Below, in pieces: positions 1-62,375 of a stretch of DNA of 64,000 nt (position 1 is its first letter; the number at the start of each line of letters is the position of its first letter). The DNA comes from Glycera tridactyla (lineage: Eukaryota). Under the pieces are notes generated by a model that worked only from the letters and a program-made list of their open reading frames with translations, was not told the origin of the DNA and ran no database searches. The stretch spans positions 22,444,001 to 22,508,000 of the forward strand of contig OZ286465.1 in assembly GCA_965644265.1 (NCBI GenBank), written 5' to 3'. The translations under genes were made by a program, and so were the position numbers.

Positions 1-391
1 AATACTGATAATGAATTTGAGATGGCTGAGGTCCTCACCAAGGTGGTGTGTCTGAGTGGCAAATCACTGAAGGGAAATGACTATGGCTTATGCCATCCAA
101 GGATGCAATTGGTTTGGGGCCACAAATGGTGCATTGTCGGCTAGCAACGACCCGTAACCTGCCCCACACCAAATATTTAGTGGAATAATGATGCCAAGGC
201 TTGATCCACATCATCCGCAGCTAAAAGGAAGTCAGTGTATCAGCTGATGCACCAAATGCCCAACAACCAGTTCCAAAACAATCACACAATCAAATGTAAG
301 GATAGAGGTGAATATTGATAACTAGAACAAGAATTGAAAGATATGGAATTACACCAATATCAAACCTATTGCGTCTCACCCATTCAGAAGT

Positions 392-445
392 AATGATTCT
401 CTTCCATGGCTGATTTTGAAATGATTCTCTTGCATGGCTGATTTT
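392..445 (+). repeat. Two-copy 28-bp tandem repeat (present in every array unit)
   Basis: atgattctctt(c/g)catggctgatttt at 393 and 421. Confidence 0.8.
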
Positions 446-589
446 CACCAACAGTCAACACAATTACTAGGAGGCCATGATGTGAAACCTCTTGCCAATT
501 AGCGTCAGCAAGAGTAGGCTGACCACTTGTATTCTCTCATTAACCTGGTCAGAATTACGTCTAGTTATTCATTGCTCTAAAAACCATAT

Positions 590-742
590 GGCTTATTCCC
601 ACTTGTCTTCGCTTATATTGATAATCAGAATTAATGTCCAGCTTTCCATTGCTTTCAAATCCAAAGGCTCATTTCCACTTGTCTTCACTCATTGAGATAG
701 TCAGAATTAATGTCCAGCTTTCCATTGCTTTGAAATCAAAAC
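590..742 (+). repeat. Two-copy 76-bp tandem repeat (present in every array unit)
   Basis: ccacttgtcttc...tcagaattaatgtccagctttccattgcttt occurs twice; acttgtcttc at 601 and 677. Confidence 0.85.
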
Positions 743-2710
743 CGTGGAAGCAGTGTCACTGCATTAAAATCATATGCTCTTATGGACCAAACTCAACTAT
801 TAGACTATCTGGCTTCAAACTTTTATGGAATGATGCTCAAAGCACAGAGGATGATTAAACAGACAATGTTTGAGACTTCCAAACGGCTAGAGATGGCACC
901 AAAGCTCTTGCAAAGCATTATCCCTTTCTCATTCTGACCCTTGTTTGGTTAGGGGATTAATGGCTTGTATCAACATGAAGGATTATGTATGCTCAGTGTT
1001 CTATGAAAGCTGGATGCTCTACAGGCATCATTCTCAATCTAATAATCAGTGTATTACCTCTGATACATTCATCTTCAACAGTGAAGAGGGCAACCAAATC
1101 CAACTGTGCATCGGACAACATGTACACCACCATTGACTATCAAAAGCTATCCACTAGTCGCTCACAAGCAGATCTGCCTCCCAACATTGATTAACAAAGC
1201 ATCAAAATGGGATTCAAGAAAAAGAGGACACGGTAAATTATCACAAATATGATAAACATAATTTGGGTTAAAGATTTTAGTGTGGCATTACATGGATTGA
1301 GAAGACAAATGAAATACACCTTCAATCCATGCTCGATTTTGTAAGTTGGTGAACGAAACATCGCACAGAAGAGGAGGAAGGTGAAAAACACACTCAAACC
1401 GATTTGAATCAAAATACAGTATTCCCTAGATGATAAGTATGTGTACACATTTCTTGAGGACAGTGGCTGGCTCTCTCTTACATGCACATGCATGCAATGG
1501 TATCATAACAAGGTGCTTGATATGGTCTGTTGTCTTGCAATCAGACCAGCGTTCAGCGAAAAAGAATGGGCCACAAGCAATGTACTCTCAGTATACAGCC
1601 AAATACATAGACATCATTATGACTGCAATGTTCTTCACTCCACACACCCACGCACTAGCTGTCATATATATTTATATTCAAAAGCCACATATCTGTTCCA
1701 CACTTGCACACAATATGGAGTAAGCACAAATTTTATTTTCAACAAGTGAAAGCATCGGATTAAGTGCGGGTGGATGCACCACTCGCAAAGACTCACTTTG
1801 CAAGAATAAATACAGCTATCCTAATCAAGCTCATACTCTGTGACTCAAGCACTCATCAAGATTCCCACATTACACGGCTCACCCTAGAAGTGTCTATGGT
1901 AAATTAAGACATCAATAAACCCAGCAAACTGAAACCACAGATTGATTGAAACATCACCTACGGCCAACAATCCTTATCATCAATACATCTTGTTACCCAA
2001 AACTAGCACTATATTATCATAGCCAGCTCAACAAGATTATCCTCCAGATATTGGAAAACCATGTTTGATTAACTCATGTGATGGTTACTACCATAGTATT
2101 CAAACCATACCAAGGAAATGATTATTATTGCAATGACTGGAAACTATGATGATTGCACTAAATCTTGAAACCATAGTAATCATACCAAAGTGATATAGTA
2201 ACTACATATACTGTTACCATGCTGTTTTTCCGCAACTAGCATGGGCTATGTTGGACACTTTTTTTACTGACCATCTCTCCTGTACTGACCTGTCAGAATC
2301 ACAGGGAATAATCATGCCAATCCGAGGTCTAGATTCTTCACAACATTGTGGGATTGGTGGCTTAAACATTAGAGGGCGCCCATTACAAACATGCTTTTTT
2401 GTGGCTGTTTGTTTGTTTGTTTGTTTGAGGCTTAACGGCATGTATCAACCCACAGGATTATGTATGCTGCATATTTGATGCTGATAGTAGGTGATATTGC
2501 ATTCCATATGGTCTGACTTTACTGGGTTTAACAGTCGTCAAGTGAAACAATAATTAGCAGTGTTCCAATCCGATGACGATTCAGACAACACTCCAAGAGT
2601 CAAGATGTCCCCATAAACAAAGTGAACATGATACAATTGCTCGTCACTAGCTGCAAGACACAAACTGTACACACACTTGGACTCAGACATATACTCACTC
2701 ATGAATACAT

Positions 2711-2741
2711 GCACACACACACACAAACACACACACACACT
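2711..2741. repeat. (CA)n microsatellite, length varies between array units
   Basis: Interrupted CA run; longer homologues near 14265, 25848 and 37423. Confidence 0.85.
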
Positions 2742-2835
2742 CAGCTCACTCCGATGCACCAACCACACCAAAGATACTATAATAAGCAGCCATGTTCATA
2801 CAGTCTAACCAGAGACACTGGTTGGACAAACATCT

Positions 2836-2841
2836 TTTATT
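2836..2841 (-). terminator. Candidate poly(A) signal AATAAA, unit I
   Basis: Homologous position to 37555-37560. Confidence 0.45.
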
Positions 2842-5800
2842 GACAAATCTGAATAATGACATCTTTCCATCATAGTAAAACATTCAACATTTAACATACA
2901 GATATCAAAATAAACAGATTCAGTTCCTTTTTTATACATGACTCTCATAATATAGTGAGATGACTAGTATGGTACACACAAGCCACCAAAAAAGACGACT
3001 GCCGGATGATGGCAGCATTGACTCAGAACAAAGCAACACATTTTAATGGTATCCTACACAAAGATGGCCACCAGAACTCTGCTGCCATACCCAAATAACC
3101 CACTGTATACTCTTAACTTGTACATAGGACAGTATCGATGATCATGATTTGCTCTCTCTGATTATATTGATGATTTTGGACAGTAAACGTAATATGAATA
3201 TGAGGTAAGTTGACTTATCCTGCAGAAATTGACACGAAAGTGCTGACTGGTTTCTGATTGTCCTCTTATACTGACTAGCTACCAAGCAATCTTTGTCATG
3301 AAATTCCAATTCCGGCATTATACCTTGTGGTCGTGCATTACAGATGTTCTACTGAGACCTTCCCCGTCTTGATTGCATTCTACCCAAAGAGAATATCCTT
3401 TGTATTGTAATAAAATACCGTTGGTTGGTTTGTTAGAGTTTAATGGCATGATGGTTATGTATGCCATGCCTTCCAGACCTACTGGGGGTCTCGGCATTGT
3501 CACTTGCAGAGACCCTGAACACAAGAGAGTAGGGAAACAGAAAATTTGTCAGCATCATTGGTTAAAATAGCAGTGATCCGAGCAACCATGCCTGATTCTT
3601 CTCTGTTCAAATGCATGACATGGAGTCATGAAGTGGTTCCGGCTGGTATAATACAAATTCTACAAATAACAGTACAAACTCATATTTACTCAAATATTAA
3701 CTGACATGGGCCAGGCATACAAGCACCTTTGTTCATGAAAAACAAAATACTGATAATATAATGTGCAAATCATTAAATGAACAGACTGAAGATAACAAAG
3801 AAAAACATTCACCTGACATCAGATGATGTGAATGCAAAGGCAAATAAAGCAACTGAACAATCAGAAAGCAGAAATGTTGATAAATTGAAGCTACATTCTG
3901 ACTATGATGCCACATATTCTTAAAAATCATCTGTTCTGAAACATCCAGCCAGATGGCACCTGAGGACACAAAACAGGTGGACACATGAAGCAAGTGGTTG
4001 ACAGCCACCATGCCCCTAATCTAAAAGCCGTCAGGAAGACTCAATTGGATCTCAAAAAATCCATCCAGTTGTGACCTGTTGCGCAATTATCATTTCACAT
4101 TTCAATTGTTATCATTCGAAATCAGACATGGTCCCAGCCATGGATGTATGTTGCCATAATTCCTCAGTGGGTTACCAAAAGGGAGAAGTTTTGCCATCTC
4201 ACAGGTCCATTTCATGTAATCAATGATACAAAAAAATCCCGAACAAACAATTTCTCACTATCTTCATCAAACTGTCCTTCGATTTATCTATTTCTATATG
4301 CATTTATCTGTTCATCTATTCATCATCATCAATTTTTTGAAATGTCATCTTTCCATGGTGATGCAACAGTGAACTGAATTACGATCTTAATATCATTAGG
4401 AGAAACAAAAAAACATTAATAAATAATCAGGATAATTGTTTCGCCTAACCAGACATTTACTTGTACACGCCAATCCACATACAGCTAGCAATTGGTCATA
4501 AATTTCAATGGCAAGTTATATGAAACTGTTGTCAACTCTTATGTTCTCTCATGACAGAGAATGTCACGAGGTCATCAAAAGACAGCGATGCAAGCAGACA
4601 CATTTCACTGCAACTTGAATTATTTAGAACAAGTAACAATACCCTTGTATATCCCACAACACTCACATAATACATGGACAACTGCACATTCCATATTATT
4701 CATCGACTGTCTTGTCCTGCTATGAACACTGTAATCGTTCGAATATACACATTTCAGCGATTGACATTCCAGTCCCATATTTGTGACCAGTATTTCTCTT
4801 TAATACACTTTGTGGATCAGTTGATTTCACACCTGAACTGGCCCATTGCAAAACTATCACTTCTCTCTCCATCAGGTTGGTTTCTCCAATCTCACTCATC
4901 ATCCAAAAAGAGAAATCCACTTTTGACATAGACAGAGAAAACAGTGCGAGAGTCATTTGCCTTTATCCATCAAAATCTGCCACTATTACTTATGATGTTC
5001 CCTCAGATTGTGCAGTGAGTAAACTTTGGTTTCGATTCTGTCAACTTGATGCAGATTTGATGCATTTTCTTTCATCATACCGAGCTGATATGCTCCCTCT
5101 TCTAGAGATACTATGCTGCTTACAACCTTACACGATTCCATAGAGGTTATTCCCAAGTGACAATAACAAATGGTGTGATCTTATAGCACGTTTAAAAAGC
5201 AAGATTCAGCTATGGCCCATATTGCCACTGTACTGTAAGTGTGATTATGCAAGCACCCATCTATCACTCACACACATGCTCAAGCACACACGATTGCACG
5301 CATACCCTCACGCTCAAGCTCACACTTGCATACACACCTTCACAATGTCTATGTACAGTTCTACGTATGATGATGGGTTTTGGCAGTGAAATACACACAT
5401 GGCATGAAAACAGACATAGGGGGACCAGTGAAAATAATGGACTCATGACTACACCTAGCGCCATCTCTAGACCAAGCAGCATAATTAATCTCTCCTCAGT
5501 CCCACCATTAGATGGCGCTTTCATAAAGCTAATACAGGAACAAAATCTGACTAAAGTGTGTACCACATGCATAGTTGAAGCACAGTTTCAAAAAATATAA
5601 GGCAACTTTATTTCAAAAAATATGATAGTGAGTATATTTTCCGTGAGTGCTGAATAGAACACCAAGATGCCAGTGACAAATGTATATCTAAATATAGTTG
5701 TTTTGATTGCATGTCAAATCAAAAAGAGATATCATCAAGGATCCTTACTGTCTTCCAGATAAACAATATGCAAACATCACTGTTCTGGAGTGAAGTAGAT

Positions 5801-7185
5801 AATCAAAGCATATCTCAAGAGAAACTAGAGATTGCTTGCAAGTCAAGAATTTACTTGCTCAAACAGAGAGGATTTTGTGGTCAAGTATACACATATAAGT
5901 ACACCCATTTGCGAATACCTCATCATAAAATTAACAGATCGGATAGGAATGAATCATGAAATTTCTTGAGCTACGGTCCAAGAATGAGTATTCACCACCA
6001 TCCATACATGCACAATCAGCCACTGTTACATGAGTGGCTGATACCATGACTCGGGATCCTATTCAGCACAAACAAAATACTATAACTCATCAACAGAAAC
6101 CATGCTAGATGCACAATGAAGCAAACGTCAGATCAAAACTAAAGGGCCAAAGTGTCAATTCCCGGACATCAATTCTTTTCCAATCATGGTGACAGTGCCT
6201 GGAGTATCTTGGCAGGCATGCGATCATCTACCGACCACTGCATGCTTGACAAGAAGCATCATTCACCACCAGGATTTGCAGAAAACAAGCGATGGCTAAG
6301 AATTCACACTTAGGCCAACTAAAGGTGCATTGTCACTTGCTTTGCTCTCGGCCGTTTCTACACAGCATCAATGCTCCTAACAAGTCCACCTTGAATAGCA
6401 GAAATTTTTACGTGGTCCAACATCGACCAATATCAGTCATTTTCCTATCTCAGATCTGGTAATGTCTGCTTCCTTTGGTTTGTGTATGAGACGGGCTGAC
6501 CTCTTGCCCCCCGACTATGACTGCTCCAGCTTCTGTCAGACCAGGACGTCTTAAAGTTACGCACACAAACACGAAATTGAATACGAGTCAAAACAGCACG
6601 AAGCAAATCCAGCACATGCCACCGGTTAAGTGTCCATTGCAGATTCCTGTGATGTTTTCTTTCGCTCAATGATTTGAAGATTCAGTCCTGGCAAGTACAT
6701 TTCGGGGTTTAACCCACATGATGGATTTGAAGGTCCAGGAGGTCCCCTGAGAGCTGCTCAATCCCTGTCGATTCGAAACTGGCTAGCACCTTCTGACCAA
6801 GATGACCTGACATTGTTACATTATCACAAATGCCTGAAATATTTTCACGGTCAATGAACGAAGGAACACTAGCGATTATCTCGAAGCCATCTGATGAACC
6901 GGCACTTCCAATCTCTCGATTCCTACGGAAAATAATGGTGCTTGTCGACCTCTGAACCACCACGAATGACCATGAAGACTGCAGCTTCCAGAAATGAAAC
7001 GGACCTCCATATTGCACTTGTTTCTGTGTCTAGATTGGCACATGTCACTGGAGCAGGTTGCAAGCATTTTGTCACACTGGCACACATCCACGCAAGCAGA
7101 CACATTGATGTAGACTCAACCACGAAAACAGCATCTGCTTCGGACACTCGATAATATCAAGGGGGGCCACAGAGTGGATGGTGTA

Positions 7186-7408
7186 TTATACAAAAGTGGA
7201 GAGTGCAGACGGGGAGGCGGCATCGGGCTCTTTCTCTTCTTTCTTCGTCTTGCCGCCGTACTGGCCAATAAAGGACCCGTCCTCGTTGAACTTACCCGGG
7301 TCCACCTCCGTGTCGTAATCGGCCATACTGTCTTCGTCACTTCCGCCCATTGATCCCAGGCCACCACTCTCCACGGACCCTTGACTCTTCTTGAAGTCAG
7401 GCTCGTCA
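7186..7408 (-). CDS. Nrg: Duplicated L1-family terminal exon, unit I (intact; usage unknown)
   Basis: Same exon with two synonymous changes (7405 GAC/GAT Asp; 7339 AGT/AGC Ser). Acceptor and stop intact. Confidence 0.75.
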
Positions 7409-7816
7409 CTGAAAACACATCAGAAACACCACACACATGAATATAAAGCATTTCTAAGGTCATACTACCCAAAAAGCACCGCTGCATGAGAAAGGACCTG
7501 CAACTTGAAGGCCAGCTCCTCTTGAGTCATCAAATCTTCACATGGCGATCACTATTCGGTCTCTTATTCAATCCATGTTCTATCGGGCAGAGACCACGAT
7601 CATGAAAAATAATCATGAGAAAGACAAGCAAAAGTAGCAACTAATTGGTTGGCTCTCTAAACATGAAAAGCAATTTGACGTCATCATCATGTCTGGATGC
7701 TGTTCCAAACATCATTGTCGCAAGAGCTATTCCTCAGCTATCTCATCGGGTCCATGTTGTACAGCTCATGAAGAAATGGGCATTCTTTCGATATCAACAG
7801 CAGAGGACAGTGTAAA

Positions 7817-8032: not shown

Positions 8033-8381
8033 ATGACAACGACAACGACGAAGTCACGGTCAAGGTCAGGTCAGCCTGAGCCAATAAGCGATTGGTAGAC
8101 CAAGAACTATAATGGGAAATGAAATCTAGAGCACTGCCATCCTGGTGATTATGTGGAATAGAAACCTTACTATGTGTATAATAGAAGTACATGTCTGCTT
8201 GGTTCAAACAATGAGCAGCAACTTGTATCGGCAGCTTGTATTCATGCGCCAGTGATGCAGTTCCCCTCACTCGAGTAAACACCACCATCACCTACATAAC
8301 TCCAACTACACCACCACGTTCCACCTACACCAGTATCACCTTTGTGGTGCTCCATTGGCAACAGTTGAATCCAACCCATGG

Positions 8382-8576
8382 TATCTAGGGGTGCAACTCC
8401 ATGAAAAAATGAACTGGAACACACACATAGATTACATTTGCAGCAGGGCCAGTAGAGTGTTATGCATACTCAGACGCAATATTGGTGCTTGCAGTCCAGA
8501 ACTGAAACTTTTATCATATATGATCCTAGTACGACCAATACTAGAGTACAGATCTAGGGCATGGGATCCTCACACT
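8382..8576 (+). mobile_element. LINE (non-LTR retrotransposon) ORF2 C-terminal fragment
   Basis: YLGVQLHEKMNWNTHIDYICSRASRVLCILRR...Y..LVRPILEY....WDPH, the typical post-RT region of CR1/L2/Jockey-group LINEs. Isolated fragment. Confidence 0.85.
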
Positions 8577-9326
8577 TTGGAGTTTGGAGTCGTGTCGACT
8601 GATACCGAAAACAATTGTCGATTGGAATAACATAAATAGCATTCAGCTAATTACATGGTTCAGTGCTAAAAACAAAGGGAATGCATGGTGTGATGTCATC
8701 AAGTCATCTGATTAATTCCATGCACACTCCAATGCCCACTGCCAGTTCTGAAAGCAGCCTGATCATGATCACTGCCTGGTCATGTTCTATGGACAGGGCT
8801 GGCTGGTCCAGGGCATGTCGCAATGTCAGCATTTTCACTTATTCAGTCTCATATAACCCAAGGCGGTTGAGAGGACGTTAGACTCAAACAGGCAAATGAA
8901 CAGTCCACCTCCTAGCATTCGTTCGCTACGGTGAATCATTCAAAATAGGTGAATCTTCCCAAATTTTCTTGAGAGTGCGAACACACCGAGTCCATGCTGT
9001 TGCTGCTGGGTGGCTTGTGATCCAGTTAACCATGTTACCAGATTTTTTTTGCTAAGCATAAATCAGCATTCGATAGTTTGGCATACCAAATTTGACTAAT
9101 AAATGCTCATAATGAGGTCGATCCCGTATTGGTTGTATGAAGAAATAAAACAACTTTGATATCTATACGTTTGCTTATACATTGGATATTCTGGTACAAA
9201 ATCTGCTCCTGTACAAATTCAATATGCAGGACAAAGTAGGGTCAGGCTCAGTGATGCAATCAAACCAAGATGATCCCCACCTATTTCAGTGTAAAATGCT
9301 ACTCTAGTCTAGATGTCCTAGTAAGG

Positions 9327-9606
9327 TAGAGTGGACCTATGTACAGAGACCACTCCTGGTTGCATTGAAAAGTGGTTTTTGGGGACAGGTGGTCTTTGAA
9401 TAGAGGTCATTTTCTCTAGAGGATATCATATTGCAACTCAGGGTGGTTCATCTTTGCAGGTAGGAGGCGATCTCTCGAGCAGGTTTGACTGTACAGGCAT
9501 TGTGCCAGTGATAGAGGTTGTTTTCCGTAAAGAATAATGTCATGTTGCAACTCAGGGTGATCCATCTTTGCAGGTAGGAGGTGATCTCTCGAGCAGGTCT
9601 GACTGT
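9327..9606. mobile_element. Degenerate MITE (family 2, TA-CAGTxAAACC type) with a tandemly duplicated right half
   Basis: Ends gcaggtttgactgta at 9493. The block ttgcaactcagggtg...tctctcgagcagg..tgactgt is repeated up to 9606. Confidence 0.6.
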
Positions 9607-12600
9607 TCAGACAGTAACAGAGATCTTACTCGGCAACCAAATCTTGTGATACATCAGCACAACAGTACCTTCATGAGAATGTGGATTGATCAGTTACTTA
9701 CCATCTTCTTTGCACCACCAGGGCTATACTGTGGCACTCATGCTATTTGAATGTGTGAAATCTAGTTGCTCAAGTCACTGATACTGCCTCTTGGGCCCTC
9801 AATGGATTTAGAGGTAAGAGTTCGTAATTATGAAGAAGAGAAGCGTATTTGGAGTGGTAAACCACAAACTGCTGACAACATGATTCAATATCTATTGACC
9901 CTATTCTCACAGCCGGTTCACTGAATGGTGTTTCGGCAACCTGACACAGGGCTCCTTCTCAGATGGGTGACCGAAATGGACAAGGTTCACCATTCAGTAA
10001 CATACCTGCACACAGATCTATAGGATCTGCACTTCTTGCACAGGAGGTACTTGCATGTGTGTGGACAGCACTGAATGGGACCCTCACATTAGTTCACTCA
10101 GGTGTGAATAGGTACTTGGTATGTTTGTTTGTTTGTTATATGTTGTCACGATACAAAGGGTGAATATGTCTTATTTTCCCTCATGGGGAAAAACTCATGA
10201 GTTAGTAGATTCAGTTCCATCTTCTCTATCTTCTATGATGTTGTGTATTCATTTATCATTGTGGAGAATTCTGTAGTTGTCCTGTTTCTATAATTTAGAC
10301 TTTGTCACATTTGGTATACCCTGTCCATGTATTATGAGGATAGGCAATCTTGGTTTCTGTTCCTGTTTTAGGTTGCCAGGCATCTTCATCAGCAGGTTTT
10401 CCCTGGATGTCTTGGAAACTTGGTTTGGGAGCAAGCTCTAGCGTTTCTTGTTCGTATCCCTGTTCTTCCAGCTATATCATTATCATACTGCGATGTTACA
10501 TGAAATTTGTTTTTATAGTTCCTTGTAGGCTCAGAAATTGGCTGTATAGGAGGGCACTGATCCAGTGTCATATGTGCTTCATGCTGCAGCCCCTTGGATG
10601 TTTGTTCCATTCTAACATGAACTCAAGTCCAATGGCCCCAAATGCAGCAGGGTGTCCAGTTGCAGCTAACAATTGTTGACGTTTTGCAAGAGAATGCATG
10701 CTGCTGTCAATCAAGCAGCAAGGGCTATTGGAATCTGTTTGTAAAGAATATCACATAGCTCTCAATGTACCTTATTCAGATCTCTACTGGTCCTCCGAAG
10801 AGAATTATTCGAGAAACTTCAAAATTCGGCCTCGAATTAAATTCATGGGATAAGGTTCTTGATGCCCGTGCAATTGGTATGGATTTGGATCATTCAAGAC
10901 TTCTCCATCTGGGTCCCCATTGGTTGTTGAAATTCTACTATCAAATTCATCCAGTGCAATTATTGTGATCAGGCCTGATTGCCAGAAGAAAAAAGGAAGA
11001 TGATGCTTATACAATTCCCAACATGTCATTTCACACACTCATACCTTGGAAGAGAACAAGAAAGACATACACTGCCTATTTTGATACATGAAATTTTATT
11101 CAACATACATCAGTGGCATACAAAATAACGAGGAAAGCTTTAATCAAAGTCCTTCTCTTGGAAGGACAGGAGGATTCATTACAAACTTATGTGAAACTCA
11201 AAAAATGTGTTCAACTGTAACATAAACCCTGATGACAAGATGGTTCGTGATTCGATCCATTGCTGAAAGAAGTTCACTTCACTCTATAATCCTATGGCAT
11301 GAAGCTTTCACATCTATCATAGGATCATGATCGAGTTGAGTTCATCCAGCAAAGGATGAATCGGATGCTGGGCATCAGGCGGTTGATGGGGATGCAGGTG
11401 AAGGTGATGCCATCAGTGAATGCCACCAGATACACATCAAGCCAACTAATGATGACGAGTATTGGGAATGAGATACAATGGCACCTGTTCATCAATAAAT
11501 AATCATATGAGTATTATAGCAACTTGAATGTCAGTTGTTAACTCGGATGAGCAGTGTCACTATCTTATCAAAACAGATATACCCATAAGCAATAAGTTGA
11601 ACAAAAATATTTGCAATACTGATAATGAATTTGAGATGGCTGAGGTCCTCACCAAGGTGGTGTGTCTGAGTGGCAAATCACTGAAGGGAGATGACTATGG
11701 CTTATGCCATCCAAGGATGCAATTGGTTTGGGGCCACAAATGGTGCATTGTCGGCTAGCAACGACCCGTAACCTGCCCCACACCAAATATTTAGTGGAAT
11801 AATGATGCCAAGGCTTGATCCACATCATCCGCAGCTTAAAGGAAGTCAGTGTATTAGCTGATGCACCAAATGCCCAACAACCAGTTCCAAAACAATCACA
11901 CAATCAAATGTAAGGATAGAGGTGAATATTGATAACTAGAACAAGAATTGAAAGATATGGAATTACACCAATATCGAACCTATTGCGACTCACCCATCCA
12001 AAAGTAATGATTCTCTTCCATGGCTGATTTTGAAATGATTCTCTCGCATGGCTGATTTTCACCAACAGTCAACACAATTACTAGGAGGCCATGATGTGAA
12101 ACCTCTTGCCAATTAGAGTCAGCAAGAGTAGGCTGACCACTTGTATTCTCTCATTAACATGGTCAGAATTACGTCTAGTTATTCATTGCTCTAAAAACCA
12201 TATGGCTTATTCCCACTTGTCTTCTCCTATATTGATAATCAGAATTAATGTCCAGCTTTCCATTGCTTTCAAATCCAAAGGCTTATTTCCACTTGTCTTC
12301 ACTCATTAAGATAGTCAGAATTAATGTCCAGCTTTCCATTGCTTTGAAATCGAAACCGTGGAAGCAGTGTCACTGCATTAAAATCATATGCTCTTATGGA
12401 CCAAACTCAACTATTAGACTATCTGGCTTCAAACTTTTATGGAATGATGCTCACAGCACAGAGGATGATTAAACAGACAATGTTTGAGACTTCCAAACGG
12501 CTAGAGATGGCACCAAAGCTCTTGCAAAGCATTATCCCTTTCTCATTCTGACCCTTGTTTGGTTAGGGGATTAATGGCTTGTATCAACATGAAGGATTAT

Positions 12601-30977: not shown

Positions 30978-31193
30978 TATGCCTATTAGACTGTCGGTTT
31001 CGTTGAGTACGGCCAGGCTGTTGAGCACTTTTCGTATTCGGGTGGCACTCAACACTTTTTCATTGCATACAAATCTCAACGGTCATTTGACTACGTTGAA
31101 CTCGTTAAACGAAACCTATTCGGGTGGGCTACGACCGTTAGGTAAATTTCCGTCAATGCACTTTCAACGAGACCTACCAGTCGAATAGGCCTA
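30978..31193. mobile_element. MITE (family 1, junction copy 'B') at the unit III/IV boundary
   Basis: Matches 7817-8032 by eye. Confidence 0.75.
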
Positions 31194-31542: not shown

Positions 31543-31737
31543 TATCTAGGGGTGCAACTCCATGAAAAAATGAACTGGAACACACACATAGATTACATTT
31601 GCAGCAGGGCCAGTAGAGTGTTATGCATACTCAGACGCAATATTGGTGCTTGCAGTCCAGAACTGAAACTTTTATCATATATGATCCTAGTACGACCAAT
31701 ACTAGAGTACAGATCTAGGGCATGGGATCCTCACACT
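31543..31737 (+). mobile_element. LINE ORF2 fragment (array copy)
   Basis: Identical translation to 8382-8576. Confidence 0.85.
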
Positions 31738-32487: not shown

Positions 32488-32762
32488 TAGAGTGGACCTA
32501 TGTACAGAGACCACTCCTGGTTGCATTGAAAAGTGGTTTTTGGGGACAGGTGGTCTTTGAATAGAGGTCATTTTGAGGATATCATATTGCAACTCAGGGT
32601 GGTTCATCTTTGTAGGTAGGAGGCGATCTCTCGAGCAGGTTTGACTGTACAGGCATTGTGCCAGTGATAGAGGTTGTTTTCCGTAAAGAATAATGTCATG
32701 TTGCAACTCAGGGTGATCCATCTTTGCAGGTAGGAGGTGATCTCTCGAGCAGGTCTGACTGT
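32488..32762. mobile_element. Degenerate MITE family 2 (array copy)
   Basis: Copy of 9327-9606 lacking a 5-bp ctcta. Confidence 0.6.
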
Positions 32763-35700
32763 TCAGACAGTAACAGAGATCTTACTCGGCAACCAAATCT
32801 TGTGATACATCAGCACAACAGTACCTTCATGAGAATGTGGATTGATCAGTTACTTACCATCTTCTTTGCACCACCAGGGCTATACTGTGGCACTCATGCT
32901 ATTTGAATGTGTGAAATCTAGTTGCTCAAGTCACTGATACTGCCTCTTGGGCCCTCAATGGATTTAGAGGTAAGAGTTCGTAATTATGAAGAAGAGAAGC
33001 GTATTTGGAGTGGTAAACCACAAACTGCTGACAACATGATTCAATATCTATTGACCCTATTCTCACAGCCGGTTCACTGAATGGTGTTTCGGCAACCTGA
33101 CACAGGGCTCCTTCTCAGATGGGTGACCGAAATGGACAAGGTTCACCATTCAGTAACATACCTGCACACAGATCTATAGGATCTGCACTTCTTGCACAGG
33201 AGGTACTTGCATGTGTGTGGACAGCACTGAATGGGACCCTCACATTAGTTCACTCAGGTGTGAATAGGTACTTGGTATGTTTGTTTGTTTGTTATATGTT
33301 GTCACGATACAAAGGGTGAATATGTCTTATTTTCCCTCATGGGGAAAAACTCATGAGTTAGTAGATTCAGTTCCATCTTCTCTATCTTCTATGATGTTGT
33401 GTATTCATTTATCATTGTGGAGAATTCTGTAGTTGTCCTGTTTCTATAATTTAGACTTTGTCACATTTGGTATACCCTGTCCATGTATTATGAGGATAGG
33501 CAATCTTGGTTTCTGTTCCTGTTTTAGGTTGCCAGGCATCTTCATCAGCAGGTTTTCCCTGGATGTCTTGGAAACTTGGTTTGGGAGCAAGCTCTAGCGT
33601 TTCTTGTTCGTATCCCTGTTCTTCCAGCTATATCATTATCATACTGCGATGTTACATGAAATTTGTTTTTATAGTTCCTTGTAGGCTCAGAAATTGGCTG
33701 TATAGGAGGGCACTGATCCAGTGTCATATGTGCTTCATGCTGCAGCCCCTTGGATGTTTGTTCCATTCTAACATGAACTCAAGTCCAATGGCCCCAAATG
33801 CAGCAGGGTGTCCAGTTGCAGCTAACAATTGTTGACGTTTTGCAAGAGAATGCATGCTGCTGTCAATCAAGCAGCAAGGGCTATTGGAATCTGTTTGTAA
33901 AGAATATCACATAGCTCTCAATGTACCTTATTCAGATCTCTACTGGTCCTCCGAAGAGAATTATTCGAGAAACTTCAAAATTCGGCCTCGAATTAAATTC
34001 ATGGGATAAGGTTCTTGATGCCCGTGCAATTGGTATGGATTTGGATCATTCAAGACTTCTCCATCTGGGTCCCCATTGGTTGTTGAAATTCTACTATCAA
34101 ATTCATCCAGTGCAATTATTGTGATCAGGCCTGATTGCCAGAAGAAAAAAGGAAGATGATGCTTATACAATTCCCAACATGTCATTTCACACACTCATAC
34201 CTTGGAAGAGAACAAGAAAGACATACACTGCCTATTTTGATACATGAAATTTTATTCAACATACATCAGTGGCATACAAAATAACGAGGAAAGCTTTAAT
34301 CAAAGTCCTTCTCTTGGAAGGACAGGAGGATTCATTACAAACTTATGTGAAACTCAAAAAATGTGTTCAACTGTAACATAAACCCTGATGACAAGATGGT
34401 TCGTGATTCGATCCATTGCTGAAAGAAGTTCACTTCACTCTATAATCCTATGGCATGAAGCTTTCACATCTATCATAGGATCATGATCGAGTTGAGTTCA
34501 TCCAGCAAAGGATGAATCGGATGCTGGGCATCAGGCGGTTGATGGGGATGCAGGTGAAGGTGATGCCATCAGTGAATGCCACCAGATACACATCAAGCCA
34601 ACTAATGATGACGAGTATTGGGAATGAGATACAATGGCACCTGTTCATCAATAAATAATCATATGAGTATTATAGCAACTTGAATGTCAGTTGTTAACTC
34701 GGATGAGCAGTGTCACTATCTTATCAAAACAGATATACCCATAAGCAATAAGTTGAACAAAAATATTTGCAATACTGATAATGAATTTGAGATGGCTGAG
34801 GTCCTCACCAAGGTGGTGTGTCTGAGTGGCAAATCACTGAAGGGAGATGACTATGGCTTATGCCATCCAAGGATGCAATTGGTTTGGGGCCACAAATGGT
34901 GCATTGTCGGCTAGCAACGACCCGTAACCTGCCCCACACCAAATATTTAGTGGAATAATGATGCCAAGGCTTGATCCACATCATCCGCAGCTTAAAGGAA
35001 GTCAGTGTATTAGCTGATGCACCAAATGCCCAACAACCAGTTCCAAAACAATCACACAATCAAATGTAAGGATAGAGGTGAATATTGATAACTAGAATAA
35101 GAATTGAAAGATATGGAATTACACCAATATCGAACCTATTGCGACTCACCCATCCAAAAGTAATGATTCTCTTCCATGGCTGATTTTGAAATGATTCTCT
35201 TGCATGGCTGATTTTCACCAACAGTCAACACAATTACTAGGAGGCCATGATGTGAAACCTCTTGCCAATTAGCGTCAGCAAGAGTAGGCTGACCACTTGT
35301 ATTCTCTCATTAACATGGTCAGAATTACGTCTAGTTATTCATTGCTCTAAAAACCATATGGCTTATTCCCACTTGTCTTCTCTTATATTGATAATCAGAA
35401 TTAATGTCCAGCTTTCCATTGCTTTCAAATCCAAAGGCTTATTTCCACTTGTCTTCACTCATTAAGATAGTCAGAATTAATGTCCAGCTTTCCATTGCTT
35501 TGAAATCGAAACCGAGGAAGCAGTGTCACTGCATTAAAATCATATGCTCTTATGGACCAAACTCAATTATTAGACTATCTGGCTTCAAACTTTTATGGAA
35601 TGATGCTCACAGCACAGAGGATGATTAAACAGACAATGTTTGAGACTTCCAAACGGCTAGAGATGGCACCAAAGCTCTTGCAAAGCATTATCCCTTTCTC

Positions 35701-37534
35701 ATTCTGACCCTTGTTTGGTTAGGGGATTAATGGCTTGTATCAACATGAAGGATTATGTATGCTCAGTGTTCTATGAAAGCTGGATGCTCTACAGGCATCA
35801 TTCTCAATCTAATAATCAGTGTATTACCTCTGATACATTCATCTTCAACAGTGAAGAGGGCAACCAAATCCAACTGTGCATCGGACAACATGTACACCAC
35901 CATTGACTATCAAAAGCTATCCACTAGTCGCTCACAAGCAGATCTGCCTCCCAACATTGATTAACAAAGCATCAAAATGGGATTCAGGAGAAAGAGGACA
36001 CGGTAAAAATTATCACAAATATGATAAACATAATTTGGGTTAAAGATTTTAGTGTGGCATTACATGGATTGAGAAGACAAATGAAATACACCTTCAATCC
36101 ATGCTCGATTTTGTAAGTTGGTGAACGAAACAACGCACAGAAGAGGAGGAAGGTGAAAAACACACTCAAGCCGATTTGAATCAAAATACAGTATTCCCTA
36201 GATGATAAGTATGTGTACACATTTCTTGAGGACAGTGGCTGGCTCTCTCTTACATGCACATGCATGCAATGGTATCATAACAAGGTGCTTGATATGGTCT
36301 GTTGTCTTGCAATCAGACCAGCGTTCAGCGAAAAAGAATGGGCCACAAGCAATGTACTCTCAGTATACAGCCAAATACATAGACATCATTATGACTGCAA
36401 TGTTCTTCACTCCACACACCCACGCACTAGCTGTCATATATATTTATATTCAAAAGCCACATATCTGTTCCACACTTGCACACAATATGGAGTAAGCACA
36501 AATTTTATTTTCAACAAGTGAAAGCATCGGATTAAGTGCGGGTGGATGCACCACTCGCAAAGACTCACTTTGCAAGAATAAATACAGCTATCCTAATCAA
36601 GCTCATACTCTGTGACTCAAGCACTCATCAAGATTCCCACATTACACGGCTCACCCTAGAAGTGTCTATGGTAAATTAAGACATCAATAAACCCAGCAAA
36701 CTGAAACCACAGATTGATTGAAACATCACCTACGGCCAACAATCCTTATCATCAATACATCTTGTTACCCAAAACTAGCACTATATTATCATAGCCAGCT
36801 CAACAAGATTATCCTCCAGATATTGGAAAACCATGTTTGATTAACTCATGTGATGGTTACTACCATAGTATTCAAACCATACCAAGGCAATGATTATTAT
36901 TGCAATGACTGGAAACTATGATGATTGCACTAAATCTTGAAACCATAGTAATCATACCGGAGTGATATAGTAACTACATATACTGTTACCATGCTGTTTT
37001 TGCGCAACTAGCATGGGCTATGTTGGACACTTTTTTTTACTGACCATCTCTCCTGTACTGACCTGTCAGAATCACAGGGAATAATCATCCCAATCCAAGG
37101 TCTAGATTCTTCACAACATTGTGGGATTGGTGGCTTAAACATTAGAGGGCGCCCATTACAAACATGCTTTTTTGTGGCTGCATATTTGATGCTGATAGTA
37201 GGTGATATTGCATTCCATATGGTCTGACTTTACTGGGTTTAACAGTCGTCAAGTGAAACAATAATTAGCAGTGTTCCAATCCGATGACGATTCAGACAAC
37301 ACTCCAAGAGTCAAGATGTCCCCATAAACAAAGTGAACATGATACAATGGCTCGTCACTAGCTGCAAGACACAAACTGTACACACACTTGGACTCAGACA
37401 TATACTCACTCATGAATACATGCACACACACACACAAACACACACACACACACACACACTCAGCTCACTCCGATGCACCAACCACACCAAAGATACTATA
37501 ATAAGCAGCCATGTTCATACAGTCTAACCAGAGA

Positions 37535-40500
37535 CACTGGTCGGACAAACATCTTTTATTGACAAATCTGAATAATGACATCTTTCCATCATAGTAAAAC
37601 ATTCAACATTTAACATACAGATATCAAAATAAACAGATTCAGTTCCTTTTTTATACATGACTCATAATATAGTGAGATGACTAGTATGGTACACACAAGC
37701 CACCAAAAAAGACGACTGCCGGATGATGGCAGCATTGACTCAGAACAAAGCAACACACTTTAATGGTATACTACACAAAGATGGCCACCAGAACTCTGCT
37801 GCCATACCCAAATAACCCACTGTATACTCTTAACTTGTACATAGGACAGTATCGATGATCATGATTTGCTCTCTCTAATTATATTGATAATTTTGGACAG
37901 TAAACGTAATATGAATATGAGGTAAGTTGGCTTATCCTGCAGAAATTGACACGAAAGTGCTGACTGGTTTCTGATTGTCCTCTTATACTGACTAGCTACC
38001 AAGCAATCTTTGTCATGAAATTCAAATTCTGGCATTATACCTTGTGGTCGTGCATTACAGATGTTCTACTGAGACCTTCTCCGTCTTGATTGCATTCTAC
38101 CCAAAGAGAATATCCTTTGTATTGTGATAAGATACCGTTGGTTGGTTTGTTAGAGTTTAATGGCATGAATCAAGCTGATGGTTATGTATGCCATGCCTTC
38201 CAGACCTACTGGGGGTCTCGGCATTGTCACTTGCAGAGACCCTGAACACAAGAGAGTAGGGAAACAGAAAATCTGTCAGCATCATTGGTTAAAATAGCAG
38301 TGATCCGAGCAACCATGCCTGATTCTTCTCTGTTCAAATGCATGACATGGAGTCATGAAGTGGTTCCGGCTGAACAACAGACTGGTATAATACAAATTCT
38401 ACAAATAACAGTACAAACTCATATTTACTCAAATATAAACTGACATGGGCCAGGCATACAAGCACCTTTGTTCATGAAAAACAAAATACTGATAATATAA
38501 TGTGCAAATCATTAAATGAACAGACTGAAGATAACAAAGAAAAACATTCACCTGACATCAGATGATGTGAATGCGAAGGCAAATAAAGCAACTGAACAAT
38601 CAGAAAGCGGAAATGTTGATAAATTGAAGCTACATTCTGAATATGATGCCACATATTCTTAAAAATCATCTGTTCTGAAACATCCAGCCAGATGGCACCT
38701 GAGGACACAAAACAGGTGGACACATGAAGCAAGTGGTTGACAGCCACCATGCCCCTGATCTAAAAGCCGTCAGGAAGACTCAATTGGATCTCAAAAAATC
38801 CATTCAGTTGTGACCTGTTGCGCAATTATTATTTCACATTTCAATTGTTATCATTCGAAATCAGACATGGTCCCAGCCATGGATGTATGTTGCCATAATT
38901 CCTCAGTGGGTTACCAAAAGGGAGAAGTTTTGCCATCTCACAGGTCCATTTCATGTAATCAATGATACAAAAAAATCCCAAACAAACAATTTCTCACTAT
39001 CTTCATCAAACTGTCCTTCGATTTATCTATTTCTATATGCATTTATCTGTTCATCTATTCATCATCATCAATTTTTTGAAATGTCATCTTTCCATGGTGA
39101 TGCAACAGTGAACTGAATTACGATTTTAATATCATTAGGAGAAACAAAAAAACATTAATAAATAATCAGGATAATTGTTTCGCCTAACCAGACATTTACT
39201 TGTACACGCCAATCCACATACAGCTAGCAATTGGTCATAAATTTCAATGGCAAGTTATATGAAACTGTTGTCAACTCTTATGTTCTCTCATGACAGAGAA
39301 TGTCACGAGGTCATCAAAAGACAGCGATGCAAGCAGACACATTTCACTGCAACTTGAATTATTTAGAACAAGTAACAATACCCTTGTATATCCCACAACA
39401 CTCACATAATACATGGACAACTGCACATTCCATATTATTCATCGACTGTCTTGTCCTGCTATGAACACTGTAATCGTTCGAATATACACATTTCAGTGAT
39501 TGACATTCCAGTCCCATATTTGTGACCAGTATTTTTCTTTAATACACTTTGTGGATCAGTTGATTTCACACCTGAACTGGCCCATTGCAAAACTATCACT
39601 TCTCTCTCCATCAGGTTGGTTTCTCCAATCTCACTCATCATTCAAAAAGAGAAATCCACTTTTGACATAGACAGAGAAAACAGTGCGAGAGTCATTTGCC
39701 TTTATCCATCAAAATCTGCCACTATTACTTATGATGTTCCCTCAGATTGTGCAGTGAGTAAACTTTGGTTTCGATTCTGTCAACTTGATGCAGATTTGAT
39801 GCATTTTCTTTCATCATACCGAGCTGATATGCTCCCTCTTCTAGAGATCCTATGCTGCTTACAACCTTACACGATTCCATAGAGGTTATTCCTAAGTGAC
39901 AATAATAAATGGTGTGATCTTATAGCACGTTTAAAAAGCAAGATTCAGCCATGGCCCATATTGCCACTGTACTGTAAGTGTGATTATGCAAGCACCCATC
40001 TATCACTCACACACATGCTCAAGCACACACGATTGCACGCATACCCTCACGCTCAAGCTCACACTTGTATACACACCTTCACAATGTCTATGTACAGTTC
40101 TACGTATGATGATGGGTTTTGGCAGTGAAATACACACATGGCATGAAAACAGACATAGGGGGACCAGTGAAAATAATGGACTCATGACTACAACTAGCGC
40201 CATCTCTAGACCAAGCAGCATAATTAATCTCTCCTCAGTCCCACCATTAGATGGCGCTTTCATAAAGCTAATACAGGAACAAAATCTGACTAAAGTGTGT
40301 ACCACATGCATAGTTGAAGCACAGTTTCAAAAAATATAAGGCAACTTTATTTCAAAAAATATGATAGTGAGTATATTTTCCGTGAGTGCTGAATAGAACA
40401 CCAAGATGCCAGTGACAAATGTATATCTAAATATAGTTGTTTTGATTGCATGTCAAATCGAAAAGAGATATCATCAAGGATCCTTACTGTCTTCCAGATA

Positions 40501-41924
40501 AACAATATGCAAACATCACTGTTCTGGAGCGAAGTAGATAATCAAAGCATATCTTAAGAGAAACTAGAGATTGCTTGCAAGTCAAGAATTTACTTGCTCA
40601 AACAGAGAGGATTTTGTGGTCAAGTATACACATATGAGTACACCCATTCGCGAATACCTCATCATAAAATTAACAGATCGGATAGGAACGAATCATGAAA
40701 TTTCTTGAGCTTCGGTCCAAGAATGAGTATTCACCACCATCCATACATGCACAATCAGCCACTGTTACATGAGTGGCTGATACCATGACTCGGGATCCTA
40801 TTCAGCACAAACAAAATACTATAACTCATCAACAGAAACCATGCTAGATGCACAATGAAGCAAACGTCAGATCAAAACTAAAGGGCCAAAGTGTCAATTC
40901 CCGGACATCAATTCTTTTCCAATCATGGTGACAATGCCTGGAGTATCTTGGCAGGCATGCAATCATCTACCGACCACTGCATGCTTGACAAGAAGCATCA
41001 TTCACCACCAGGATTTGCAGAAAACAAGCGATGGCTAAGAATTCACTCTTAGGCCAACTAAAGGTGCATTGTCACTTGCTTTGCTCTCGGCCGTTTCTAC
41101 ACAGCATCAATGCTCCTAACAAGTCCACCTTGAATAGCAGAAATTTTTACGTGGTCCAACATCGACCAATATCAGTCATTTTCCTATCTCAGATCTGGTA
41201 ATGTCTGCTTCCTTTGGTTTGTGTATGAGACGGGCTGACCTCTTGCCCCCCGACTATGACTGCTCCAGCTTCTGTCAGACCAGGACGTCTCAAAGTTACG
41301 CACACAAACACGAAATTGAATACGAGTCAAAACAGCACGAAGCAAATCCAGCACATGCCACCGGTTAAGTGTTCATTGCAGATTCCTGTGATGTTTTCTT
41401 TCGCTCAATGATTTGAAGATCCAGTCCTGGCAAGTACATTTCGGGGTTTAACCCACATGATGGATTTGAAGGTCCGGGAGGTCCCCTGAGAGCTGCTTAA
41501 TCCCTGTCGATTCGAAACTGGCTAGCACCTTCTGACCAAGATGACCTGACATTGTTACATTATCACAAATGCCTGAAATATTTTCACGGTCAATGAACGA
41601 AGGAACACTAGCGATTATCTCGAAGCCATCTGATGAACCGGCACTTCCAATCTCTCGATTCCTACGGAAAATAATGGTGCTTGTCGACCTCTGAACCACC
41701 ACGAATGACCATGAAGACTGCAGCTTCCAGAAATGAAACAGACCTCCATATTGCACTTGTTTCTGTGTCTAGATTGGCACATGTCACTGGAGCAGGTTGC
41801 AAGCATTTTGTCACACTGGCACACATCCACGCAAGCAGATACATTGATGTAGACTCAACCACGAAAACAGCATCTGCTTCGGACACTCAATAATATCAAG
41901 GGGGGCCACAGAGTGGATGGTGTA
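37535..41924 (-). other. Candidate long 3'UTR (~4.4 kb) of the L1-family gene
   Basis: Non-coding sequence between the stop codon and an AATAAA followed by GT-rich sequence. An earlier AATAAA about 1.6 kb after the stop is an alternative end. The true end is not provable from sequence alone. Confidence 0.45.
37555..37560 (-). terminator. Candidate poly(A) signal AATAAA, unit IV
   Basis: Minus strand gtcAATAAAagatgtttg, followed by a GT-rich tract and a (GT)n repeat. Confidence 0.5.
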
Positions 41925-42147
41925 TTATACAAAAGTGGAGAGTGCAGACGGGGAGGCGGCATCGGGCTCTTTCTCTTCTTTCTTCGTCTTGCCGCCGTAC
42001 TGGCCAATAAAGGACCCGTCCTCGTTGAACTTACCCGGGTCCACCTCCGTGTCGTAATCGGCCATACTGTCTTCGTCGCTTCCGCCCATTGATCCCAGGC
42101 CACCACTCTCCACGGACCCTTGACTCTTCTTGAAGTCAGGCTCATCA
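41925..42147 (-). CDS. Nrg: L1-family gene terminal coding exon, gene-proximal copy (unit IV)
   Basis: Acceptor gtgttttcag|. Reads (T)DEPDFKKSQGSVESGGLGSMGGSDEDSMADYDTEVDPGKFNEDGSFIGQYGGKTKKEEKEPDAASPSALSTFV*, with the ankyrin-binding FNEDGSFIGQY motif and a class-I PDZ-type C-terminus. Confidence 0.95.
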
Positions 42148-42555
42148 CTGAAAACACATCAGAAACACCACACACATGAATATAAAGCATTTCCGAGGTC
42201 ATACTACCCAAAAAGCACCGCTGCATGAGAAAGGACCTGCAACTTGAAGGCCAGCTCCTCTTGAGTCATCAAATCTTCACATGGCGATCACTATTCGGTC
42301 TCTTATTCAATCCATGTTCTATCGGGCAGAGACCACGATCATGAAAAATAATCATGAGAAAGACAAGCAAAAGTAGCAACTAATTGGTTGGCTCTCTAAA
42401 CATGAAAAGTAATTTGACGTCATCATCATGTCTGGATGCTGTTCCAAACATCATTGTCGCAAGAGCTATTCCTCAGCTATCTCATCGGGTCCATGTTGTA
42501 CAGCTCATGAAGAAATGGGCATTCTTTCGATATCAACAGCAGAGGACAGTGTAAA

Positions 42556-42767
42556 TAGGCCTATTAGACTGGTCAGTTTCGTTGAGTACGGCCAGGCTAT
42601 TGAGCACTGTTCGTATTCAGGTGGCACCCAACACTTTTTCATTGCATACGAATCTCAACGGTAATTTGACTACGTTGAACTCGTTAAACAAAACCCATCC
42701 GGCTGGGTTACAACCGTTAAGTCCTGCAATGCCCACTCAACGGAAACTGTCCATTCAAATAGGCCTA
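42556..42767. mobile_element. MITE (family 1, intronic copy 'A'), ~33-bp imperfect TIRs, TA ends
   Basis: Left end taggcctattagactggtcagtttcgttgagt versus reverse complement of right end taggcctatttgaatggacagtttccgttgagt. Non-coding, 212 bp. Confidence 0.75.
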
Positions 42768-62368: not shown

Positions 62369-62375
62369 TGTGTGT

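Follow-up and report, generated by a model that had tools for sequence, protein, structure and literature searches.

A probable young tandem segmental duplication carries the FIGQY terminal exon of a putative L1-family gene in Glycera tridactyla

Background

When the last coding exon of a gene occurs several times in tandem, do the extra copies serve as alternative last exons (ALEs) for one upstream donor, or did the exon simply travel with a much larger duplicated segment? This question is raised by a stretch of 64,000 nucleotides of the Glycera tridactyla genome (assembly GCA_965644265.1, contig OZ286465.1, positions 22,444,001 to 22,508,000), which was analysed as a whole and is hereafter called the window. 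A sequence-only reading had proposed that only the ankyrin-binding last exon of an L1-family gene is amplified there, in four intact copies that could act as ALEs, and had regarded such an array as unusual. In vertebrate L1 and in fly Nrg, the FIGQY region is known to bind ankyrin (PMC2173803, PMC3627646), and the motif suggests the same capacity for the gene of Glycera tridactyla.

Results

The gene lies on the minus strand of the window, and its features are collected in Table 1. A single-pass transmembrane (TM) segment is followed by a basic juxtamembrane K/R-x-x-GGKY motif and then by the FGEY region (...EEGGFGEYTR), as in L1CAM, and the terminal exon, with the motif FNEDGSFIGQY in 4/4 copies, matched the Pfam family Bravo_FIGEY (PF13882; E=1.1e-11, 46.1 bits for a cutoff of 23.8, profile positions 38-85 of 86). 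On these sequence features, we take the gene to be of the L1CAM/neuroglian type and annelid-like. The TM and FGEY exon pieces alone gave no Pfam score as they are too short, and support for the junction of the FGEY and terminal exons therefore comes from Lamellibrachia instead: an annotated but incomplete protein of the annelid Lamellibrachia satsuma contains the FGEYTRT/DEPx junction as well. The FGEY exon, which encodes the peptide V YEKEKLRAQDPNYPNRDDEEGGFGEYTR T and ends in the donor AAC/GTAAGT, is 64% identical to residues 4-28 of the Lamellibrachia partial protein P0025. In addition, the TM exon matches that of a related genome (L002), in which an fn3 ORF lies upstream of the equivalent exons, and in which the last intron measures ~0.8 kb compared to ~21 kb in Glycera tridactyla. 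In Glycera tridactyla, the exons further upstream, expected in this family to encode six Ig and several FnIII domains, would be located past the right end of the window. The closest match of the terminal exon in the protein collection is 79-81% identical, so that Glycera tridactyla itself is not represented in it, and the three related genomes each displayed one Bravo_FIGEY ORF only within ±10 kb.

The gene structure proposed by the sequence-only reading was confirmed, with all of its coordinates. Indeed, phases 1 and 2 join the TM, FGEY and terminal exons in frame, with donors and an acceptor (ttttcag/T at 42147) that fit, and the TM and FGEY exons occur once each in the window, outside the repeated unit. 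All four terminal exon copies translate into one and the same 73-aa peptide (DEPDF...FNEDGSFIGQY...PSALSTFV and then a stop; minus strand, one-base phase offset), and the two diagnostic variants of unit I (7339 and 7405) were confirmed as synonymous changes. Every copy retains the acceptor, the frame, the stop and the AATAAA: units II-IV are identical over the 60 nt of acceptor context and the 100 nt around the first AATAAA, and the acceptor context of unit I displays two changes, at -47/-48. A correction concerns the AATAAA itself, which is present downstream of every copy but first appears 1,574 nt past the stop (the equivalent sites in the other units start at 28773, 17198 and 5612). One donor (63153) faces at least four sets of acceptor, stop and poly(A) signal, which is the structure of alternative last exons with a shared donor; as for isoforms that differ in product or regulation, the peptide is the same in all copies and the 3′UTR differs at the rate of neutral DNA. 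An older, diverged FIGQY exon (in the style of Nrg167/180) was also sought in the 21-kb intron by tblastn with the exon and 48 relatives at relaxed thresholds, and this search returned the four copies only.

Table 1. Coordinates of the gene, array and repeat-element features in the window
Feature	Position	Strand	Remarks
TM / juxtamembrane exon	63829..64000	-	donor G/GTAACG after 63829; near window edge
FGEY exon	63153..63240	-	88 nt; phase 1 in, phase 2 out; single copy
Last intron	42148..63152	-	~21 kb; proximal end of the array inside
Boundary element Rp	42547..42774	.	228 bp, MITE-like; proximal end of the array
Unit IV	31200..42546	-	proximal, would be first transcribed; 400 bp intron, terminal exon, 3′UTR, ~9-9.5 kb downstream non-coding DNA
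Terminal exon copy IV (proximal)	41925..42147	-	acceptor ttttcag/T, 73 codons, FIGQY, PSALSTFV C-terminus, TAA
First AATAAA, copy IV	40346..40351	-	1,574 nt past stop; T-rich tracts on both sides
Junction element Rj	30969..31199	.	between units III and IV; ~85% identical to Rp
Unit III	19625..30968	-	from self-comparison
Terminal exon copy III	30347..30569	-	DNA identical to copy IV
Unit II	8039..19393	-	from self-comparison
Terminal exon copy II	18772..18994	-	DNA identical to copy IV
Unit I	1..7807	-	starts at the equivalent of unit IV 34771; cut by left edge
Terminal exon copy I	7186..7408	-	two synonymous transitions (7339, 7405); peptide unchanged

Self-BLAST and a repeat search of the window delimited a head-to-tail array with a period of 11,575-11,616 bp and 98.2-99.3% identity. 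The window holds at least 3.7 units, and the four exon copies counted by the sequence-only reading are indeed there but represent a minimum, since unit I is cut off by the left edge of the window and the array continues past it. The array begins within the last intron, 400 bp upstream of the last acceptor of the gene, and thus carries the FIGQY exon, the 3′UTR and the downstream DNA as passengers. It is in this sense misleading to state that only the last exon is amplified, as the coding exon represents 223 bp of an ~11.58-kb unit (2%); the terminal exon seems to have been carried along when a whole segment, with its start in the last intron, was duplicated in tandem. Another gene or RNA as the target of amplification was considered and rejected: ORFs of at least 85 aa in unit IV gave no Pfam match, no recognisable Rfam family or tRNA was found in the unit, and translated and nucleotide comparisons with the loci of the relatives revealed conservation of the exon and the start of the UTR only. 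Note that one ORF of unit IV looks by eye like the tail of a retrotransposon RT, with no Pfam match even at E<=10.

The units differ by 0.17% (III-IV), 0.7% (II versus III or IV) and 1.0% (I versus the others) in pairwise substitutions, ~75% of the changes between units being transitions and indels being few. Site patterns are tree-like, with I+II against III+IV at 24 sites and the conflicting patterns at 2 and 0 sites, and the array is also a mosaic, with only 3 differing sites among units II-IV over 31200-34770 and 0.2-0.7% divergence over 35000-42550. Paralogous variants around the exon (given as I/II/III/IV in unit IV coordinates) are 42144 G/A/A/A, 42078 A/G/G/G, 41889 G/G/A/A, 41880 C/T/C/C, 41433 A/G/G/A, 41047 A/A/T/T and 40823 A/A/G/A. 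Such tree-like, mosaic and transition-rich differences argue for a real young array rather than for an assembly artefact, in which one or two true units would have been over-expanded or haplotypes stacked. An artefact of this kind is in our view very unlikely: it would agree with the small difference between units III and IV (0.03-0.17%, which could be at haplotype or error level) and with an array that reaches the window edge, where the contig end may be near, but it fits poorly with four distinguishable sequences, with differences that include microsatellite and 5-62-bp indels and not homopolymer noise, and with junctions that are clean, identical to each other, located inside a repeat element and without Ns. 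The sole N run (138 N at 50389-50526) lies in unique sequence of the last intron, 7.6 kb from the array. Stacked haplotypes of a two-copy locus, considered as a particular case, are unlikely as well, since the expected pairing (I=III / II=IV) was found at zero sites. Altogether, the nucleotide data suggest that the array is likely a real, young and macrosatellite-like tandem segmental duplication, which resembles ordinary structural variation, and the locus is a probable copy-number variant.

The proximal end of the array lies in a MITE-like element (Rp), which is short and non-coding, folds as a hairpin (z=-5.9) and displays imperfect terminal inverted repeats of ~40 nt (26/30 nt match) that include the palindrome AATAGGCCTATT; no target-site duplication was recognised in its flanks. 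The unit junctions carry a second version of the element (Rj), whose copies are identical to one another (the other two at ~19394-19624 and ~7808-8038), giving the arrangement of a repeat-flanked duplication, with Rj at three junctions and Rp at the proximal end; within the window, these two versions were the only matches. The array limit at 42557 given by the sequence-only reading marks the end of near-identity but not that of homology. Indeed, the units are 100% identical up to this position, 11 nt into Rp, the next ~217 bp are 85% identical (Rp versus Rj), and homology ends exactly at the right inverted repeat of the element, at 42774.

An element copy at every unit junction suggests unequal recombination between two flanking repeats. 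According to this model, which is drawn from the proximal boundary as the distal end of the array lies outside the window, two diverged copies of the 228-bp element would have flanked an 11.35-kb segment, and unequal recombination would have converted R-X-R into R-X-R-X-R, with later expansion and partial homogenisation by unequal crossing-over or gene conversion between the long units. Against it stands the switch point, which is located only 11 nt inside an 85%-identical element and is thus a poor substrate for classical homologous recombination. The same array could alternatively have started from a break at the end of the MITE-like element, either by alternative or aberrant transposition of a DNA transposon or by microhomology-mediated template switching during replication, in which case the 11 shared nt would be microhomology only. 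Such a break would account for the switch from 100% to 85% identity so near the left end of the element (11 nt), with copies only 85% alike, and would be in line with its transposon-type terminal inverted repeats and with Drosophila hydra, in which duplicated terminal-type exons are flanked by the transposable element DINE-1 (PMC9013439). However, neither an autonomous transposase gene nor a target-site duplication or footprint was found, and simple unequal exchange would be expected to leave just this pattern, R-X-R-X-R with an internal R of hybrid type. We consider the break rather unlikely as the first step and retain unequal recombination between the flanking repeats as the working model.

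Variable sites are found at densities of 0.9% in the exon, 1.6% in the 3′UTR and 1.5% in the downstream non-coding DNA (Fisher p>0.7). With exon, UTR and non-coding DNA varying equally, the distal exons give no indication of selection, whether as a rate difference or as a significant synonymous excess; the exon substitutions are synonymous in 2/2 cases (P=0.11 under neutrality), which is weakly compatible with constraint. The exon copies are still intact, as is expected of copies too young to have decayed (divergence of at most 1%). Given these equal densities and this low divergence, the intactness of the copies is no evidence of their use.

Discussion

The proximal copy (42147-41925) would be the first to be transcribed and is equipped with a poly(A) signal. 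Nearly all transcripts would therefore be spliced from the FGEY donor to this copy, and transcription would end ahead of the next unit or shortly past it. The distal copies would remain silent or be rarely used following poly(A) read-through, and, if used, they would give an identical protein with a 3′UTR at least 98.4% identical, so that gene dosage and protein product would both be unaltered. To judge from the genomic sequence, use of the proximal exon alone is most likely. Functional alternative last exons, for which read-through would allow the FGEY donor to splice to copies III, II or I in some cells (e.g., neurons in which an ELAV-type factor suppresses cleavage at the proximal site), would yield the same protein with slightly different or differently regulated 3′UTRs, and we regard them as improbable. 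The identical acceptor, frame, stop and AATAAA context of every copy, the U-rich tracts around the poly(A) signal, the two synonymous substitutions of copy I and the precedents in the L1 family and in tandem terminal-exon clusters (PMC8055025, PMC3627646, PMC9013439) are consistent with such a role. However, all copies encode one protein, the UTR differences (~1-1.6%) show no structured difference, substitutions are as dense in the exon and UTR as in the remaining, non-coding DNA, U-rich tracts near AATAAA are generic, and the proximal acceptor is transcribed 11.6 kb earlier with its own poly(A) signal.

Read-through as far as unit III is quite conceivable, since neurons of Drosophila are known to bypass proximal poly(A) sites in L1-family genes. 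A newborn ALE system, in which such a bypass would open at least four equivalent FIGQY exons to the FGEY donor in neurons, nevertheless appears highly doubtful; if true, it would represent the first step towards the two FIGQY terminal exons of Drosophila neuroglian, before the copies diverge. Splicing of the distal exons would then show the birth of ALEs by duplication in an L1-family gene, as a young counterpart of the old and diverged Nrg167/Nrg180 with the protein still unaltered. Under the preferred reading of proximal use, the array is a clear case of a segment that was recently duplicated in tandem, is bounded by repeats and happens to include a terminal exon. It also carries a warning for annotation, as the extra FIGQY exons could be miscalled as fragment genes or false isoforms.

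Annelid orthologues of the L1CAM family (e.g., Lamellibrachia satsuma KAI0213653.1, partial, and contigs from ENA, Logan and NCBI) have terminal exons 55-81% identical to that of Glycera tridactyla and share with it the invariant KFNEDGSFIG-Y, PSALSTFV and the FGEYTRT/DEP exon junction, but the relatives inspected contain a single FIGQY ORF within ±10 kb. Tandem alternative terminal exons are themselves already known from Drosophila nrg and pip. In Drosophila neuroglian, the FIGQY region lies on two separate alternative last exons, Nrg167 and Nrg180 (PMC3627646), and the distal one is reached when ELAV blocks cleavage at the proximal 3′ end (PMC8055025); calling the present array unusual was thus an overstatement. 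The Glycera array resembles nrg in that a single donor precedes several terminal exons, all of which contain FIGQY and have separate 3′ ends. However, the nrg exons, old and diverged, differ in the C-termini that they encode and have a demonstrated tissue-specific use, whereas the Glycera copies are at least 99% identical, encode one peptide, lie in 11.6-kb units and are known from genomic sequence alone.

The Drosophila pip, PGRP-LC and hydra clusters also contain terminal or first exons in head-to-tail repeats, and DINE-1 at the hydra exons parallels the MITE-like element at each Glycera unit junction. These arrays are compact, diverged and transcriptionally validated, in contrast to the large and near-identical units described here, of which the exon represents 2%. 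A further likeness is to repeat-flanked segmental duplications and macrosatellite copy-number variants, with which the Glycera array shares multi-kb units, a repeat at the junctions, an identity gradient and mosaic homogenisation; it differs from typical cases in that its flanking repeats are short (228 bp) and 85% identical, with the switch at the very edge of the repeat.

Organization of the array and of the gene

The locus is best classed as a tandem segmental duplication, bounded by repeats, that takes in a terminal exon. Repeat search within the window revealed an array of head-to-tail units that recur every 11,575-11,616 bp and, since unit I is cut by the left window edge, the array extends past the window and the copy number of four is a minimum. 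Window GC content (~40%) is evenly spread, and the sole N run (138 N, 50389-50526) lies in unique sequence of the last intron, with 7.6 kb separating it from the array.

Features of the array and of the adjoining gene (units in plus-strand coordinates)
Feature	Position	Strand	Description
Transmembrane exon	ends 63829	minus	donor G|GTAACG
FGEY exon	63240-63153	minus	88 nt; encodes V-YEKEKLRAQDPNYPNRDDEEGGFGEYTR-T; donor AAC|GTAAGT
Terminal exon, proximal copy (IV)	acceptor ttttcag|T at 42147; stop 41927-41925	minus	73 codons, DEPDFKKSQ...KFNEDGSFIGQYGGK...PSALSTFV
Unit I	1-8038		left window edge cuts at equivalent of unit IV 34771
Unit II	8039-19624
Unit III	19625-31199
Unit IV	31200-42774
MITE-like element Rp	42547-42774		228 bp; ~40-nt imperfect terminal inverted repeats containing palindrome AATAGGCCTATT

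The gene runs on the minus strand, with its last three exons within the window and an intron of 21 kb between the FGEY exon and the proximal terminal exon. The predicted in-frame splicing of the transmembrane and FGEY exons to the FIGQY terminal exon, as proposed by the sequence-only reading, holds: the splice phases are compatible (1, then 2), and the predicted exon-exon junction recurs in an annotated partial protein from the annelid Lamellibrachia satsuma (...EEGGFGEYTRT-DEPEYKKS...). The terminal exon matches Pfam Bravo_FIGEY over the curated cutoff (E=1.1e-11), and its 42 short homologues in public assemblies (43-83% identity) all carry PF13882. Taken together, this match, the homologues and the Lamellibrachia junction lead us to assign an L1CAM/neuroglian-type adhesion gene from the window exons, the ectodomain exons lying outside the window. 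Invariant across an alignment of ten homologues are KFNEDGSFIG-Y and the C-terminal PSALSTFV, the latter looking like a class I PDZ ligand.

Tblastn of the terminal exon recovered exactly four copies in the window and no diverged fifth FIGQY copy. Exon copies II, III and IV share one DNA sequence, from which copy I departs by two transitions (7339 and 7405), both synonymous. The first AATAAA follows the stop at a distance of 1,574 nt, with 100 nt of surrounding sequence essentially the same in all four copies. Thus, tblastn, translation and signal comparison confirmed the earlier claim of four intact exons, each with acceptor, frame, stop and AATAAA. Over 60 nt of acceptor context, units II-IV do not differ, and copy I departs from them at two positions, -47/-48; these adjacent substitutions (7455-7456, equivalent to 42194-42195) fall where a branch point is expected upstream of the acceptor, and are the sole splice-context difference among the four copies.

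The earlier interpretation was only partly supported: an identical protein and unchanged gene dosage stand, but the exon alone is not what was amplified: of the 11.58-kb unit, 223 bp are coding exon, and intron (400 bp), 3'UTR and downstream DNA (~9.5 kb) make up the remainder. No Pfam match was obtained for other unit ORFs, no Rfam family or tRNA was detected in the unit, and translated and nucleotide comparison with loci of related genomes showed conservation of the exon and of ~170 bp at the start of the UTR only. Because no other candidate amplification target was found in the unit, the terminal exon looks like a passenger of the amplification. The unit also carries a (CA)n tract and small internal repeats (76-bp period x 2.9 copies at 35293-35511; 114-bp direct repeat of 88% identity at 32579-32769). 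Note that on the plus strand, 200-600 bp away from the unit junction, an ORF fragment at 31417-31791 (…NPWYLGVQLHEKMNWNTHIDYICSRASRVLCILRRN…LVRPILEY…) looks by eye like the C-terminal portion of a reverse transcriptase from a non-LTR retrotransposon, with no Pfam match even at E<=10. In addition, a dispersed repeat in which an ...ETC.ERPP.RDH...-type reading frame recurs is present in the intron (61878-62183), in the array unit (32463-32567) and in a related genome (locus L002, 17353-17505); it has no significant Pfam match and probably represents a widespread family of transposable or SINE-like elements.

Reality and origin of the array

Internal sequence comparison of the units bears on whether the array is real. 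Over the part common to all four units, substitution divergence is 0.17% for III-IV, ~0.7% for II vs III/IV and ~1.0% for I vs the others; transitions account for three quarters of the substitutions, and the few indels, namely a local duplication of 62 bp, changes in microsatellite length and deletions of 5-12 bp, are of a biological kind. Site patterns are tree-like, grouping I+II against III+IV at 24 sites with conflict at two. Moreover, divergence among units II-IV is mosaic, with three differing sites over 31200-34770 (3.57 kb, the distal third) vs 0.2-0.7% over 35000-42550, a pattern which gene conversion or unequal exchange in a real array gives and which suggests a recent tract of either kind, with a breakpoint between ~32.8 and 35.0 kb. 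An assembly artefact is therefore improbable, as tree-like patterns, mosaic divergence, transition bias and indel types all speak for a real array. Concatenated haplotypes of a two-copy locus are unlikely, the predicted I=III / II=IV pairing occurring at 0 sites. Unit I alone carries the 62-bp tandem duplication (2259-2620, vs 37176 in unit IV) and deletions of 8, 10 and 12 bp at positions equivalent to 37438, 38166 and 38370, which provide useful unit-specific markers.

The proximal end of unit IV is 100% identical to the three internal junctions up to 42557; beyond, identity falls to ~85%, with a 6-bp indel, over ~217 bp and ends abruptly at 42774. The inverted-repeat pattern of Rp was not reproduced by chance in shuffles, its folding gives a long hairpin (z=-5.9), and no target-site duplication was seen. 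Since the three junction copies (Rj) are mutually identical, and X denotes the 11.35-kb segment, the junction anatomy gives the form X-Rj-X-Rj-X-Rj-X-Rp, as expected if the array arose by unequal exchange between two diverged MITE-like copies on either side of X. This model rests on the proximal boundary and the three junctions, the distal array end lying outside the window. Since the identity switch lies only 11 nt inside the element and Rp and Rj are only 85% alike, breakage at the end of the element or a microhomology-mediated event has to be taken seriously as an alternative.

The single FIGQY ORF within +-10 kb in each of three related genomes, together with a last intron of ~0.8 kb in L002 (GCA_029979725.1, JARPNT010000056.1) vs 21 kb here, indicates by sequence comparison that intron expansion and array are lineage-specific. 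Indeed, L002 holds the transmembrane, FGEY and FIGQY exons inside 1.7 kb (6053-7770). A weak second Bravo/FIGQY-like match (16965-17063; 49% over 45 aa, E=9e-6) is present ~9 kb further downstream on the opposite strand of L002, perhaps marking an L1-family paralogue in tail-to-tail orientation.

Possible use of the distal exons

Intactness of the copies was not borne out as a sign of use, and is the neutral expectation at <=1% divergence. Variable sites make up 0.90% of the coding exon (2/223), 1.58% of the 3'UTR, 0.75% of the duplicated part of the intron and 1.48% of downstream non-coding DNA, with no significant difference in density from downstream DNA for exon (Fisher p=0.77) or UTR (Fisher p=0.73). 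Nor is there a significant synonymous excess in the exon, since one third of its possible transitions are synonymous (2/2, P=0.11). The sequence of the distal exons thus shows no evidence that the copies matter.

We infer that the polymerase would meet unit IV first, that its acceptor would be joined to the sole FGEY donor and that its poly(A) signal would end the mRNA. Units III, II and I, 11.6, 23.2 and 34.7 kb further along, would be reached only after read-through, and splicing to them would require the last intron to be still unspliced; any product would be the same protein. The rival, functional alternative last exons reached when neurons bypass the proximal 3' end, has a precedent in the family, ELAV causing such bypass at Drosophila nrg and ewg (PMC8055025). 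However, beyond U-rich tracts at AATAAA, which are generic, nothing in the window favours it.

Comparison with known systems

The locus is of value mainly as an annotation caveat and as one likely to vary in copy number; it might also provide raw material from which alternative last exons arise. The sequence-only reading regarded a tandem array of an identical terminal exon in a neural adhesion gene as unusual, yet a tandem set of terminal exons is a kind already known: in Drosophila neuroglian, Nrg167 and Nrg180 come from two alternative terminal exons that both carry FIGQY ('encoded by unique exons', PMC3627646). Like it, the array belongs to an L1-family gene with several FIGQY terminal exons; unlike known terminal-exon sets, it is very young, its copies are identical and the exon is embedded in a large unit.
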